Shown here piece after piece: positions 35,483 to 41,481 of a DNA stretch of 64,000 nt (positions are counted from its first letter, which is position 1; every line of letters begins with the position of its first letter). A program made the position numbers and the translations under genes. Origin of the DNA: Fonticula alba ATCC 38817 (Eukaryota > Protista > Nucleariida); NCBI GenBank assembly GCA_000388065.2, contig KB932201.1; one strand, written 5' to 3'. The notes under the pieces were generated by a model, which was not told where the DNA came from, did no database searches, and saw only the letters and a program-made list of their open reading frames with translations.

Positions 35483-35686
35483 ATGTCCGACGGTCACTCA
35501 ACGGAGTCAACGCTCAGGTCGATGTCGGGCCGCTCCCAGTCCTCGTGTGGCTACTGCGGCAAGAGTCAGACCTCCACCTTCTCGTTGTGTGCGCTTTCCA
35601 TGTCCCCAAGGGGCCGATCTCCCTCATGACCGCGCCCTTTGTCGCGCGATGTCCCTCTAACTAGCCACCCTTCTTTTTTGCCCCCC

Positions 35687-35729
<43 letters not shown>

Positions 35730-35830
35730 TCCCCCCCCACACCACCCCCCGCACGCCCCCCTCCCCCTCACTCCCTCCCCCCCCCCCCCCCCCCCCCTCC
35801 TCCCCCCTCCCCCCCCCCCTCCCTCCTCCG

Positions 35831-35878
<48 letters not shown>

Positions 35879-38567
35879 TCTCCCCGGTGTATCGAGCNNN
35901 NNNNNNNNNNNNNNNNNNNNNNNNNNNNNNNNNNNNNNNNNNNNNNNNNNNNNNNNNNTCCCTTCGAGCCTCCCACTAATCCTTCTCCCTGTCCGTTATC
36001 GTCCTTTCCCGCCATCACCGCCACCCTGGCAGTCATGCTGGATGTGGGGTTCCGTCGATCTGGCAGCTTTTTCTACCGGCCCAACTTGCTAGCCACCTGC
36101 TGCCCTCAGTATCCGATTCGCCTGCAAGTTGGCCCCAAGAGCCAATCGACCTTGGCATTGCTGTCGGGCTCTCCGACCCCCGATCACTCGCATTTTTTTC
36201 CCACCCTCTCCAATGGATTCCACCCGACCTCGGACCAGCGGAATTCCCTTCGCCGACTGCAGCGTCTGCTTCAGCAGGGCGTCATCCAGCCGAGTACCCC
36301 CGCCCCCAGCCCAGGCAAGGGTACTGCTGCAGCAGCTGCTACTGCTGCTGCTCCCTCGGCCGCCGCCGCACCACAACCCGGCTCCCTGGGCGATCTCCTG
36401 GCGGAGGCCCTTCGCAGTCTCCATGGGGACCTCCTGATGGAGGCCGGCCTGGAGGCCACGGATCCCGGCATCCTGCGCCTCGGGCCGAATCGCACATACC
36501 AGCCCCCTGGCGGACGACGGTGCCAGGCCAGTGGGGAATCTTGCACGCGCGAGATCGCCTGCTGGTCCAGTGCCGCGGCCTTTCGCCTGCATGCTCTCAT
36601 GCGCGCTTCCGGTGCTGGCGGTGGCGGTGGCGGTGGGATTCCACCTCCGCCGGCCATTGCAGCCGGTCTGGCGGCCAACCTGTCAGCCGCACTGGCCAGT
36701 CATCGCCGGATTGCCGGGCTCCCCGGCATGCATGCCACTTGCCATGCCGCCGGGCCGTATGTCAACATTCTCCTTTGCCAGGACCCCCCTCCGGCGGATA
36801 AGCCCATGGTCACCGAGACCCCTGGCCATGCCGATGAGCCCGCTGCCCCGGCCTCCGGGTCGGAACCCAAATACATGCTCGTCACGCGCATGGTTCCAGC
36901 CTACTACTCGGCGGAATCGCATGCCCTCTACATGGCCTACCAAATCCGCACACACAAGTCCAAGCCCAACGAGGTGGGCGCCAGCCAGTATTTCGACTTC
37001 CTCATCAGCAAGTGCGTTGCCCTTGGGCCGCCCCTCGCCAGCCTCTCGGGCCATGCTTTCCTCCCGATGCCCGAGCACTGACACAGGGCCGGATGCCCAT
37101 CGCTTGCAGCCCCTTCAGGGACACCGTTCCGAAGGACTTGCAGGAGTACGCCGGCCCGGGGCACGAGTCGGCCGAGTACTCGGCCTCGCTCGGGGCCTTT
37201 GGCTATTTCTCCGACACTCCTGACCAGTGGCTGGACGATGTCAACTCGGATCGAGTCCTGCCGGCCGTGGGGGCCGACTACGCGGCCAACGCCCCGGATG
37301 TGCCCTTCCGTGAAGACTTGGACCTGCGCACTGGCCCTGCTCTGCCTCTTGGGAGCTACCATTTGGAGTACCGGCTCCGGCGTGTCGATGCCACCGGGCC
37401 CGGCCGCCTGGTGGCTGTCAGCGTGTTGGACGTCCTGCCACATAGCCTGTCCAGTGTCTATTCCTTCTTCGTGCCGGCCTCCGCCGGGTTGGGGGTTTCC
37501 TTCGGCGCGATCACCGCCCTTCTGGAGATTGAGCTCTGCCGGCGGGGGTCTCTGCCCAGCTCGGCGGCGGCGCTGGCCCGGCTGCACACCCCGGAGGACC
37601 CGTGGTTTGCCTTCACGGCTGGCGGGGCGGCCGCCGCTCGGGCCAAGGCCCCCCCGCACGCCGACAATCCCCTCTGGCCGTACTATGTCCTGGGGTTCTT
37701 GATTCTTTCCTGCCCGAAGATGGTGTACAAGGCCAATTACCACCCAAGCGAGATGGTGTGCCCGGCAACCGGTCGCTGGACTCCGATCCTGGCATACCAC
37801 ACCCTGCCATCCTATCGGCCGGACCCGGAGACCGGCCCCTCAAATGCCCTGCTCCTGCGTGTGTATCGCTCTGCGTTGAACTTTCTCCGCGAGCGCGAGC
37901 GCCGGCCGAAGGCCGAACGCTTTGATTTGGCCCACCAAACCCCCCTTCCGGGGCTCTGGCATTATGCCCGCCCGATTGGCCAGCAGATAAACACGCGTGC
38001 TGTGCAGGTGCGCAATGAGTCGCGTGGCCCGGGGTTGTGCTCTTCTTCGTCCATCTTTCCCCCCCCCCCCTCCCTCACTGTTGGCTCACATATCTACTCT
38101 CCTCTCTGCCTGCCTCTCTCTCTCCTCCCCCCCCCCCTCGCCTCCCCTCCGATGCATTCCTTCGCCTGCGCTCTGGCTTGGACCTGCAAATGCCCCAGGC
38201 ATTCAGCCGATTCTTCCCAGACCTTGTTTTCCTGCAGCTTGTCAGCTGGGATGACATGAATGTCATCCTCTTCCAGGCTTCCTATTTTGCGGACATGCCC
38301 ATCAAAAAGATGCCCCCCAAGGTGAGGGCATTCATCGGTTCGGACCCGAACCGGTTGAGTGCCGTCCGGGGGGGCATGTTTGCCCCGGTCCTCTCGATCC
38401 TGGCCTCCGCCTATGAGCCCCTGCTGCTGCAGCTCCTTGCCGGCGAGGCAACCCTTCCAGAGCGTACCGCCAAGCGCTACTCCGACCCGGACCCGGCCGA
38501 GGAGGCCGACACCTTCCACACCTTCCTCCGCATGACCACCTCAATTCGGCTGTTGGAGATCTTCTAA
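35483..38567 (+). CDS. ATE1: Arginyl-tRNA--protein transferase 1; exons about 35483-35586, [likely exon lost in gap], 36033-37011, 37110-38007, 38238-38567
   Basis: Motifs SSCGYCGK, MLDVGFRRSGSFFYRPNLLATCCPQYPIRL, FHPTSDQR, ESHALYMAYQIRTH, GSYHLEYRL, LVAVSVLDVLPHSLSSVYSFF, ALLEI and YYVLGFLILSCPKMVYKANYHPSEMVCP. Confidence 0.92.
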
Positions 38568-38912
38568 ATGGGTTGCTTTCTCCGGGCATCCTCCAATCCG
38601 ACTTGCCTGTCCTCTTATGTTGGTGGCCATTGTGGCGAGGAAACCCCGGGAGCCTGGAATGCACGCACACGAATGTCGCCCTAAGTCCAATTGGGACTCC
38701 TCCCCCCCCCCCCCTCTCTCCCCGGTGTATCGAGCAACGGGGGGAAGTCCAAGTGAGCGTCGACACACAAGCCAGGGAAACCCATGGACAGAGAAGCAGC
38801 GCGGGAGGGGGGAACCCCACGAAAGAGGGCGAGCGAGGGAATTTGACAACTGAAGAGCTTTAATATCACATCTGCCTTTTTCTGGGCCTCGTTTGGAGCG
38901 AGCGCAGAGCGG

Positions 38913-38995: not shown

Positions 38996-41481
38996 TCAGA
39001 GACGGCACCGCAGTCGAACCGAGCGCCGGGGGGTCGGCACGCTACAGCTCAGGTCCAGCAGACCGCCACTGATGGCCGGGCGCTCGGCCTCCCTTCCGGC
39101 CACCTGGGCCTCAAAGTGCACACGGTGGCGAAGGGCGGGATCCGGTGAAAACCGGACCACCAGCGTGTCGCCCGGGAAAACATGGTTGGAAAAGCGCCCG
39201 GCGATGGCCGTGGCTTCGGGCAAGGGGCCCTGCAGGGCTGGGACCATGCCTGCCGGGTCATCCTCGGTGCCCTCCTGGAGGTAGGACAGGATGGCTCGGA
39301 CCGCCACGCCCAAGGTGCACAGGCCGTGCAGGATGGGCCGGTCGAAGCCGCCGATCTCGGCGAAGTCCGGTGAAATGTGCAGCGGATTCAGGTCCCCGCT
39401 GGCCAGGCGGTACAATGCCGCCTGCGAGGGCCCGGTCGGCGCCGCCACTTGGACCAGATACTTGCTGGGGGCAGCGGGCCCCACAGCCGGGGCCGGGCGA
39501 ATCGGCAAACTGAGGGCCGAGTCGCGGCGGGAAAAACTTGATCGCGCAAGTTGTCGGATGAATGCCGGGTCAGGGAAGGGCGAGCATGGCAACCGGGCGC
39601 TTGGTCAGGGAAGGCTCCCCCTGACGGGTCACCACAAAGACGTACTTCCCGGCGCCGCGGATGAAGACCGCAAATTCATTGAAGAAAATCAGCCGACCAC
39701 TCTCATCGAAAGTGTCCACGCCGGTAATAACCAGCGCGCCCTGGGGCAGTGTGGACAAGCGGCAGGGTCAGTAACTGCGCCAGGCATGGCAATCCCAAGA
39801 GCTGGCCCATCGGGAAAGCCCGAGACGGGGGGGGGAGAGGGGCGAAGGGCCAAAAGTACCTTGCCCTTATCCTGGATATCAATGATGTATGCCTGGCAGC
39901 TGAGGGCCCCGCTTGTGGGGAGGGTGTCATAGATCTCGATGCGCTGCTCGCCGTGCAACAATCGAGCCTACCACGGACAAGAGGGTCAGCATTGCGGTGC
40001 CAATCGAAGGGGGCAGCAGGGAAGACGCCATTGGCGCCAGTGGCCCCGCACCAGGTCAAACTTCGGCAGATGCTGGCTGAGATTCATCGATGCGAGCAGA
40101 TTGAAGGCGCACACCACCGGGAAGGTGGGCAGACAGTGGAAGTAGTCGTGCTGCTCGTAGACCACCGATAAGTCCTGGCTGGTGGCACCAACCCCAAGGG
40201 CATAGAGTGCCACGTCGCGCTCGGAGAAAAGGAACTCGGCCTTCGGGCTGCGGAAGCGCCGCGACCAGAGGATGTCCACGAAGTCACTGCCCCGGCCGGC
40301 GGTGGCCGAGGCATCCTCCGAGAGCAGGCGCTTGATGATGGGCTCGTGAACTTGGCCCTGGGGGTCGTCGGCGCTGGCCGAAAGGTCCATATCGAGGATC
40401 TGACCGACCGGGTGGGGGTCGCCACGACGCCGAGGCCCCAAGCCAGAGACCGGGTGAGGAATGGCCGAAGGCGGGGTCAATGTCAGGCATTCGGATCGTC
40501 GAACATGGCCCTGCAGCGGTGACAACATCCGCAGCACGTACAGACTGGATGATGCCGGGATTCCCGCGCGCGGACAGTGCCACGGGCTGGGTGAAGACTC
40601 GGCGGACGCGCGCAAACCAGCCGCTCCCGGCCTCGAAGCAGCCGCCCGTCACCTGGCAACTGCCGGGATACGGGTGGGGACGAGCAGTGTGTGAGAGTTT
40701 GAACAGGCAGAACATCGGCCAGGTCCGACCGGGGGGGGAGGAAGGTTGTTCAAAGGGAGAGTCGACGCTGGGACAACGTACGCAGAGACCGAAAGAAGGG
40801 CAAGGATCGGCGAAACATAGGCCGGCGAGAGGCCTGGGCGGGGGGTGGCAGCCCCGAGAAGTCAGTGGCGGGGGGGAGGGAGGGCGCCCGGCGATCAGGC
40901 GTGTCTTCTCCCCCGGCTGAGAGCGGGAGGAAGAACCGGCAGGGCAAGGGCAAGGGAAGGGCATCAGGGCGTACGGGCAACCATGTCCTCCGGCAGGATG
41001 GTGGCCGTCATGGCGGTACCCGCATTTGGGCACAGGGTGTTGGCCGTGATGTTGTAGTCGCGGCCCTGGCAGGCCAGCATGTCGGTGAAACCATGAATGG
41101 CGGCCTTGGCTGAGGGCGGGGGACGCAGAGAACCGAGGCCGAGGGAATCACCCGGACATAGGCTGGATGAGCAATCGGAGGGTGGTCTCGTGTGGCGCGC
41201 AGTGGGGAGGGCAATCTCTCAAAAGCGGGACGGTCACATACCGGTGGAGTAGTTCGCCTGGCCGAAGTTGCCGTACAGCCCCACGCTGGAGGAGGTGTTG
41301 AACACTCGGCCATGGCGCTGGTGCATGAAGTGCGGCCAGGCGGCCGCCGTGACCGCAATCGTGCCCGCCAAGTGGACCATCATCACGGCATCCCACTCCT
41401 GCTCGGTCATCCGAGCGAAGGATCGGTCACGCAAGATACTGCCAACAGGAGAAAGGGCGATTAGCGCGCGCGAGCGGAGAA

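Follow-up and report, generated by a model that had tools for sequence, protein, structure and literature searches.

A probably folded domain of the arginyl-tRNA synthetase Add1 type within the predicted ATE1 arginyltransferase of Fonticula alba

Introduction

How ATE1 arginyltransferases select and capture Arg-tRNA-Arg, in the face of the translation machinery, has been stated as an open question (PMC10115844; bioRxiv 10.1101/2024.08.23.609426). The question is raised in a particular form by a locus of Fonticula alba ATCC 38817, located in a 64,000-nucleotide stretch of contig KB932201.1 (hereafter, the window). The gene in question, H696_00269, is annotated as an arginyltransferase of 744 residues (P0001, an exact protein match), and a segment of some 130 residues separates the two conserved blocks of its product. 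An earlier reading of the DNA (the original prediction) likened this segment to Add1, the domain with which arginyl-tRNA synthetase (ArgRS) begins. Is the segment a mere linker, or is it a domain with which the transferase might read its tRNA?

The evidence presented below indicates that the segment is probably a folded domain, homologous to the Add1 domain of ArgRS, that would read the tRNA-Arg D-loop. It is no novelty of Fonticula, which is one member of an old and widespread architecture, ATE_N - Add1-like - ATE_C.

Sequence relationship of the insert to ArgRS

In the GC-rich, eukaryotic DNA of the window, + strand open reading frames in the interval from 35.6 to 38.6 kilobases carry both Pfam families of ATE1, in the order typical of that enzyme: ATE_N (PF04376) just 5' of the segment (expectation value, E, 9.6e-11; a partial match from profile position 32, owing to an assembly gap), followed by ATE_C (PF04377) 3' of it (E 4.2e-20). 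Human ATE1 (8tzv) matches the Fonticula protein with E 5e-21, and the invariant core residues of ATE1 are present (alignment A2). By these domains, the protein is predicted to be an ATE1 arginyltransferase. The insert, originally placed at positions 36380-36777, translates in frame to its 132 residues (residues 116-247 of P0001) and does lie between the ATE1 core blocks, with ATE_N upstream and ATE_C downstream; the insert is contained in one long exon (36035-37011). The bounds of the domain were set here at residues 115-249 (36377-36781, + strand).

When 1.84 billion cluster representatives were searched exhaustively with phmmer, 150 ATE1 representatives were obtained (151 in the count used with the hidden Markov model, HMM, described below), and a few of the phmmer alignments ran straight through the insert. 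Word-indexed homologue searches returned the query or one relative only, the candidate list being filled by low-complexity words. The insert segments of 46 proteins, picked by a regular expression on a motif ending in G-[H/F/Y]-[L/I/V]-N-F, constitute alignment A1. The HMM derived from A1 matched 70 of the 151 ATE1 representatives at E < 1e-3, including 24 that lay outside the HMM-building set; none of the representatives in this set of 151 with inserts shorter than ~150 residues was matched.

The Fonticula copy is highly divergent (10-25% identity) and rich in Ala and Gly. Its membership was examined with a leave-one-out HMM made from the 45 other inserts, which aligned Fonticula residues 114-230 with E 1e-6 (for a single target). 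The segment scored 21.0 bits, as compared to a maximum of 7.2 bits among 2000 composition-preserving shuffles. Judged by sequence comparison, membership of the Fonticula segment in the family is independent of composition, and the resemblance goes beyond chance.

The family, in turn, is related to ArgRS. When the A1 segments were scanned singly, 26 of the 46 matched PF03485 (Arg_tRNA_synt_N), with a best E of 7.5e-13, and no other Pfam family was matched by more than one of them. Six of ten full-length ATE1s tested exceeded the PF03485 gathering score of 21.5 bits (P0130, 46.0 bits; P0055, 34.7; P0081, 33.4; P0075, 32.2; P0003, 25.9; P0041, 22.2). The top match of the A1 profile among all PDB sequences was human cytoplasmic ArgRS (4r3z; E 2.9e-9, profile positions 7-129 of 134), followed by the ArgRS of P. 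horikoshii (7.7e-6) and then those of Klebsiella, E. coli, Neisseria and Thermus. Some members have kept literal ArgRS motifs: H-G-D-Y occurs in P0081, and A-A-G-P-G-F-[IL]-N-F in P0129 and P0131. For the ATE1 of Riccia sorocarpa, PF03485 is already part of the precomputed Pfam annotation. The resemblance to the ArgRS N-terminus, proposed from the Fonticula letters alone, is thus borne out through the family profile, as well as by the structural matches described in the following section.

Predicted structure of the domain

The AlphaFold2 model of the domain, computed with alignment A1, is ordered, with a predicted local distance difference test score (pLDDT) of 82.4 and a predicted template modelling score (pTM) of 0.77. 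The modelled elements follow the order alpha-beta-beta-alpha-alpha-beta-beta (a helix, two strands, two helices and a beta-hairpin), namely helix 115-136, strands 149-151 and 172-179, helices 181-191 and 206-221, and strands 232-239 and 242-249. The N-terminal helix, four-stranded antiparallel sheet and two further helices of the Add1 fold are therefore all present in the model. When the full-length protein was modelled, pLDDT ranged from 74 to 95 over the domain; within the insert it fell below 50 only in the linkers (87-108 and 262-268) and in a loop (163-166). Apart from the linkers and this short loop, the insert is thus predicted to be ordered, and the domain is probably folded.

The seven best matches in an unbiased scan of 48,161 PDB representatives, which was not based on Foldseek, were all ArgRS, in each case over the first ~100 residues, i.e., the Add1 domain; the structural likeness to ArgRS expected from the sequence was thereby found. 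Among the Swiss-Prot models of the AlphaFold database, 23 of the 30 top matches were ArgRS N-termini, and two more were Arabidopsis ATE2 (residues 163-282) and ATE1 (residues 147-279).

In the model, the domain has helix alpha-C of the GNAT fold on its N-terminal side and strand beta-6 on its C-terminal side, and it is tethered by two linkers of ~30 residues that are predicted to be flexible. The insertion site is bracketed by the alignment with human ATE1 (residues 52-81 and 290-323) and by the modelled helix 66-81 and strand 280-288. Since the flanking blocks align to human residues 52-81 and 290-323, the Fonticula segment corresponds to the region of the human ATE1 loop 105-268. The features of this part of the gene are as follows:

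36218..36280, + strand: residues 62-82, with the GNAT-fold helix alpha-C (helical in the model from 66 to 81, pLDDT 85-88)
36281..36376, + strand: linker 1, residues 83-114, Ala/Pro-rich and predicted to be flexible (pLDDT <50 at 87-108)
36377..36781, + strand: Add1-like (Arg_tRNA_synt_N-like) domain, residues 115-249 (profile, shuffles, model and structure matches)
36746..36766, + strand: putative A20-pocket counterparts on beta3/beta4, A238 (36746-48), Y242 (36758-60) and N244 (36764-66)
36782..36871, + strand: linker 2, residues 250-279, Pro-rich (pLDDT 46-61; residues 262-268 <50)
36872..37011, + strand: strand beta-6 and start of ATE_C, residues 280-326, at the end of exon 2 (strand modelled at 280-288)

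The last of these blocks, residues 280-326, aligned with human ATE1 290-323, and a splice donor follows position 37011.

Residues of the A20 pocket

The Add1 domain of ArgRS recognises the D-loop of its tRNA, and the major identity element, A20, is accommodated in a pocket, the floor of which is formed by beta3/beta4 (PMC3956977). In the E. coli enzyme, A20 is held by F36, Q40, A78 and N84 and is stacked on F82, with N84 playing the central part (PMC8975779). The alignment of the A1 profile with human ArgRS places the G-h-l-N-F of ATE1 opposite the G-F-I-N-V of ArgRS. The beta3/beta4 part of the pocket (residues of the A78, G81, F82 and N84 type) is recognizable in Fonticula, with P241 occupying the Gly column. 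The A78-equivalent column was left unconstrained by the regular expression and serves as a selection-free check, whereas the counts for the Gly, aromatic and Asn positions in A1 are inflated, because the members were chosen by that very motif:

E. coli A78 column: A/S/T in 40 of 46 A1 members; A238 in Fonticula
E. coli F82 column: H/F/Y in 46 of 46 A1 members; Y242 in Fonticula
E. coli N84 column: N in 46 of 46 A1 members; N244 in Fonticula

Among the 12 HMM hits that are independent of the regular expression, the Asn is kept in nine, and the preceding position is usually aromatic.

Expression of the segment

Four small runs of 2012 from the same organism contain the locus in contigs, which were mapped to positions 35960-38700. 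Contigs cover 36046-37011 and show no joint there, while 37012-37109 and 38008-38198 have been spliced out of them. One contig (X1 record 2) spans 36189-36838 uninterrupted, and in two others (X2 record 6 and X4 record 12) the C-terminal half of the domain is joined to the spliced ATE_C exons within a single contig. The two GT..AG joints mark the contigs as RNA-derived, and since they retain the segment while both downstream introns have been removed, the segment belongs to the mature mRNA. The possibility that 36377-36781 might be spliced out, which had been left open from the DNA, is thereby disposed of.

Comparison with known systems

The closest parallel is the Add1 domain of ArgRS itself (PF03485; structures 2ZUF of the P. 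horikoshii tRNA complex, 4Q2T of human, 5YYN and 4OBY of E. coli, and 1IQ0 of T. thermophilus), which has the same fold and order of elements. The two are further alike in the significant sequence match at the level of the family, in the retention of the beta3/beta4 motif (a small residue ... G-aromatic-x-N) and in the tRNA-Arg partner. In contrast, the synthetase domain forms the N-terminus of a class I enzyme, whereas here it is an internal insert of a GNAT-fold transferase. Moreover, that half of the pocket to which F-G-D-Y-Q contributes has degenerated in the ATE1s, and in ATE1s other than that of Fonticula the Phe/Tyr at the stacking position is often replaced by His. The Fonticula domain also differs from that of ArgRS by extra loops at residues 152-171 and in a poly-Gly stretch (193-201).

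The insert of mammalian ATE1 occupies an identical insertion site. In human ATE1, the loop 105-268, between alpha-C and beta-6, contacts the D- and T-arms in the cryo-electron microscopy structure of the ternary complex (PMC11283454), and the insert of mouse ATE1, as modelled with AlphaFold, surrounds the acceptor stem and T-loop as well as part of the D-loop (bioRxiv 10.1101/2024.08.23.609426). Proposed or observed contact with the D-/T-arms of tRNA-Arg is thus a further likeness. However, the animal element is largely disordered, with a single conserved basic helix, as opposed to the folded Add1-like domain predicted in Fonticula, plants and algae. The disorder across the insert that typifies the mouse and human proteins is not found in the Fonticula model, while the site between alpha-C and beta-6 is the same.

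The plant and algal enzymes share the same three-part architecture (Arabidopsis ATE1/ATE2, Q9ZT48 and Q9C776; Riccia, KAL3680317.1; Selaginella, XP_024529360.1; Chondrus crispus, XP_005711646.1). The loose similarity to plant ATEs that was mentioned in the original prediction proved to be real in Riccia, Selaginella and Arabidopsis. The Arabidopsis models match that of Fonticula structurally, although the Fonticula copy is much more divergent and has no direct Pfam match.

A more distant analogy is provided by DALRD3, which reportedly carries the DALR anticodon-binding domain of the ArgRS type and directs METTL2 to tRNA-Arg (PMC7237682). This is likewise a non-synthetase system that borrows a tRNA-recognition module of ArgRS in order to target arginine tRNAs; it differs in that the module is the C-terminal, anticodon-binding one, resides on a separate subunit and serves m3C methylation.

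Proposed mechanism and alternative explanations

Helix alpha-C binds the acceptor arm of the tRNA in yeast and human ATE1 (PMC11283454, PMC10115844). In the mechanism proposed here, this helix and the GNAT core would grip the tRNA by its acceptor arm and its arginyl-CCA end, and the tethered Add1-like domain would swing onto the elbow of the tRNA and read the D-loop, probably at A20. The base would be read through the beta3/beta4 pocket, i.e., a small residue ... Gly-aromatic/His-x-Asn, represented in Fonticula by A238, Y242 and N244. With such two-point recognition, tRNA-Arg would be bound more tightly and more selectively. The analysis documents the homology of the domain, its predicted fold, its place in the protein, its expression and its taxonomic spread, whereas its binding of RNA, a specificity for A20 and an effect on arginylation are inferred.

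Several observations weigh against this proposal, in addition to the inflated motif counts given above. The PF03485 comparison suggested at the outset succeeded for the family but not for the Fonticula segment alone, which gave no PF03485 match in Pfam at E <= 10 or E <= 1. A phmmer search of PDB sequences with the segment returned no ArgRS and only low-complexity chance matches. Because the segment alone matches no ArgRS, its link in sequence to the synthetase is transitive and passes through the family. The matches in the AlphaFold database are modest (E ~2e-2; TM-scores by query of 0.29-0.45 for the ArgRS and ATE entries), and in a Foldseek search of the PDB, in which human ArgRS appeared at rank 8, the best ArgRS match was not significant (E 2.0, probability 0.47, TM-score 0.43). 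Both structural models were computed from family alignments and represent the family fold threaded on the Fonticula sequence, such that they do not constitute independent evidence. The half of the pocket formed in ArgRS by F-G-D-Y-Q (E. coli F36 and Q40) has not been retained: I-A-C-W-S-S occupies this site in Fonticula, and the family consensus is x-x-Y-T-S-N, in which an aromatic residue and a downstream S/N persist, with G-D-Y in few members. A tRNA scan of the window found no tRNA gene, and hence the window offers no position 20 of a Fonticula tRNA-Arg for comparison. Finally, yeast ATE1 works in its absence, and a minihelix of the acceptor arm is enough for arginylation to occur (PMC10115844), so that the chemistry does not require the domain.

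The main alternative accepts the ancestry of the fold and denies its present function: an Add1-derived domain that no longer reads tRNA would serve as a protein-protein interface, a lid controlling entry to the GNAT cleft or a structural spacer. The ATE1 family has not conserved the GDYQ half-pocket, 3 of the 12 unbiased members have lost the Asn, and yeast ATE1 needs no such domain; all this is in keeping with this view, as is the proposal that the mouse insert also occupies the GNAT cleft and acts as a regulator (bioRxiv 10.1101/2024.08.23.609426). We nevertheless consider it unlikely, since conservation within the family is highest precisely in the columns equivalent to the A20-contacting residues A78, F82 and N84 of E. 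coli. In addition, the insertion directly follows the tRNA-binding helix alpha-C, at a site where the human element touches the D-/T-arms, and the cofactor of ATE1 is the same tRNA that is recognised by the Add1 domain of ArgRS.

The remaining alternatives question the domain itself. A variable, disordered linker of the animal type, in which the likeness to ArgRS would be a chance effect of Ala/Gly-rich composition, might be suspected from the Ala/Gly/Pro-rich character of the region, from single-sequence PDB matches that are restricted to low-complexity entries (e.g., a poly-Gly ubiquitin construct) and from publications in which an insertion resembling an intrinsically disordered region (IDR) is described at this site for plant and slime-mould ATE1 as well. 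It is contradicted by a pLDDT of 82 with seven regular secondary-structure elements, by the failure of all 2000 shuffles to reach the real HMM score, by a family that passes the Pfam gathering score and by the seven best structural matches, all to ArgRS; we regard it as very improbable. Convergence of fold and motif, without shared ancestry with the ArgRS domain, is held to be just as improbable: the domain is indeed small (~90 core residues) and of simple alpha/beta topology, and the TM-scores are modest, but the profile E-values of 7.5e-13 and 2.9e-9 extend over the full domain length, and literal ArgRS motifs occur in P0081, P0129 and P0131. An artefact of annotation or assembly (an intron left unspliced, or a chimeric joining of ATE1 and a fragment of an ArgRS gene) has the least claim of all and is scarcely credible. 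An assembly gap does lie 80 nucleotides upstream of the exon, and the annotated model is imperfect, with a truncated N-terminus and one misplaced acceptor; yet the C-terminal half of the domain and the spliced ATE_C exons occur together in single RNA contigs, and the same architecture recurs in dozens of unrelated genomes and transcriptomes. A folded Add1-type domain that would read the tRNA-Arg D-loop is accordingly the explanation we favour.

Distribution and origin

The module was detected in the ATE1 proteins of the following organisms:

Land plants: Riccia (liverwort), Selaginella (lycophyte) and Arabidopsis
Algae: the green alga Tetraselmis and the red algae Chondrus, Agarophyton and Galdieria
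Rhodelphis, the haptophyte Diacronema and the stramenopile Chrysoparadoxa
Acrasis kona (Heterolobosea), Protostelium (Amoebozoa) and Fonticula (Holomycota)

Fonticula is the only opisthokont member identified. Yeast ATE1 has only ~50 residues at the insertion site, and the insect representative (P0116) has a long insert that produces no Add1-like HMM signal. Since the module extends across most eukaryotic supergroups, an early origin with later losses can be argued, and the distribution points to a fusion early in eukaryotic evolution rather than an event in the Fonticula lineage. The original prediction spoke of recruitment into the arginyltransferase; an ArgRS-related module is indeed contained in ATE1, but this wording understated the age of the fusion, which is ancient and widespread.

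A broader scenario can be put forward tentatively, with the balance of probability slightly against it. The last eukaryotic common ancestor would already have had an ATE1 with an A20-reading Add1 domain derived from ArgRS; this domain would subsequently have been lost in yeasts and other fungi and, in animals, exchanged for a disordered loop whose basic helix continues to touch the D- and T-arms. On the same, equally tentative terms, the history of the domain would follow the identity rules of tRNA-Arg, and the "IDR" of the literature would represent a remnant or a replacement of a folded reader. The cytosolic ArgRS of fungi is indifferent to position 20, and fungal tRNA-Arg carries C/U20, as does the nuclear tRNA-Arg of diatoms (PMC8975779); the coincidence of C/U20 with a yeast ATE1 that lacks the domain is a suggestive correlation. 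Should this scenario be true, most eukaryotes would select Arg-tRNA-Arg for arginylation by two-point recognition.

Long inserts (190-270 residues) without an Add1-like HMM signal were observed at the same site in P0116 (Ostrinia), P0145, P0058 and P0077, and these may be either decayed Add1 domains or replacements. A degenerate Add1 domain was sought in the insect and animal-like inserts (P0116 and P0145), and no HMM signal was obtained, a result that is neutral as to whether a remnant exists. A separate observation concerns the Acrasis kona protein KAL0476525.1 (P0075), a full ATE1 with ATE_N, ATE_C and the Add1-like domain, which bears the name 'arginyl tRS' at NCBI, probably a misnaming driven by its PF03485 match.

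Relation to previous work and significance

A full-text literature search (ATE1 together with ArgRS or Add1, and A20 recognition by ArgRS) revealed no link between ATE1 and the N-terminal domain of ArgRS, with much of the subscription literature falling outside its scope. Recent structural papers on ATE1 refer to the region as an unstructured loop or IDR. PF03485 is already attached to some ATE1 entries by automatic Pfam annotation, and the novelty thus lies in recognition and interpretation rather than in detectability. As far as we have seen, the enzyme and the tRNA-recognition module are each known, and it is their combination that has so far been left uninterpreted.

The structural studies were performed on the yeast, mouse and human enzymes, i.e., in lineages that lack the domain. 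In Fonticula, as in plants, algae, amoebae and excavates, a D-loop reader of the synthetase's own type beside the acceptor-arm helix would offer a concrete hypothesis for the capture of Arg-tRNA-Arg, and it puts the "IDR" at this site in a different light. The domain is also of relevance to the N-degron biology of plants, in which ATE1/ATE2 take part in oxygen sensing. Together with DALRD3, it would constitute a second case in which a recognition module of ArgRS has been reused for arginine tRNAs.

Gene model and minor observations

The remaining features of the gene are listed below:

35483..35600, + strand: candidate exon 1 of ATE1, starting at an ATG by translation, absent from P0001; 3' boundary putative
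35898..35958, no strand: run of N marking an assembly gap, in what is presumed to be intron 1, preceded by a long poly-C tract (~35680-35880)
36035..36127, + strand: ATE_N core, residues 1-31, with the CCPQY..IR motif (Pfam ATE_N)
36128..36217, + strand: residues 32-61, a loop of low confidence specific to Fonticula that separates helix alpha-C from the ATE_N strands
37012..37109, + strand: intron of 98 nucleotides, GT..AG (RNA contigs; joint 37011->37110 in 4 of 4 runs)
37110..38007, + strand: exon 3, catalytic core of ATE_C (Pfam ATE_C, RNA contigs)
38008..38198, + strand: intron of 191 nucleotides, GT..AG (RNA joint 38004->38196, reported here with the cut three places further right)
38199..38567, + strand: last exon, with the helical extension of the C-terminus and the stop codon (list of open reading frames, P0001 sequence, RNA contigs to 38679)

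Because the assembly gap and the poly-C tract interrupt intron 1, the annotated ATE1 is truncated at its N-terminus and starts inside ATE_N. The candidate exon 1 contains an N-terminal Cys motif, CGYC (35546-35557), which fits the start of ATE_N in homologues; no RNA contigs were found over this exon, and its linkage to exon 2 is presumptive. The ATE_N core aligned with residues 52-81 of human ATE1 and residues 80-107 of the K. lactis/yeast enzyme. The loop at 36128-36217 corresponds to a gap of 27 residues relative to P0002, has pLDDT <50 at residues 38-57 and is kept in the RNA contigs. Further lineage-specific insertions of low confidence (pLDDT <50) interrupt conserved blocks of the Fonticula protein at residues 330-399 and 471-508 of P0001 (exon 3).

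The annotated acceptor of the first intron seen in RNA is located 9 nucleotides downstream of the RNA acceptor (37109). The RNA form reads ...FLISNPFRDTV..., versus ...FLISKDTV... in the annotation, and is closer to the ATE1 consensus FLxxSPL. At position 36898, all four RNA-derived contig sets have G where the assembly has A, a synonymous difference at the third base of a Pro codon that could be due to strain variation or an assembly error rather than to editing. Downstream of the gene, on the - strand, an open reading frame of 198 residues (38996-39592) resembles, by eye only, a hydratase of the MaoC/hot-dog type.

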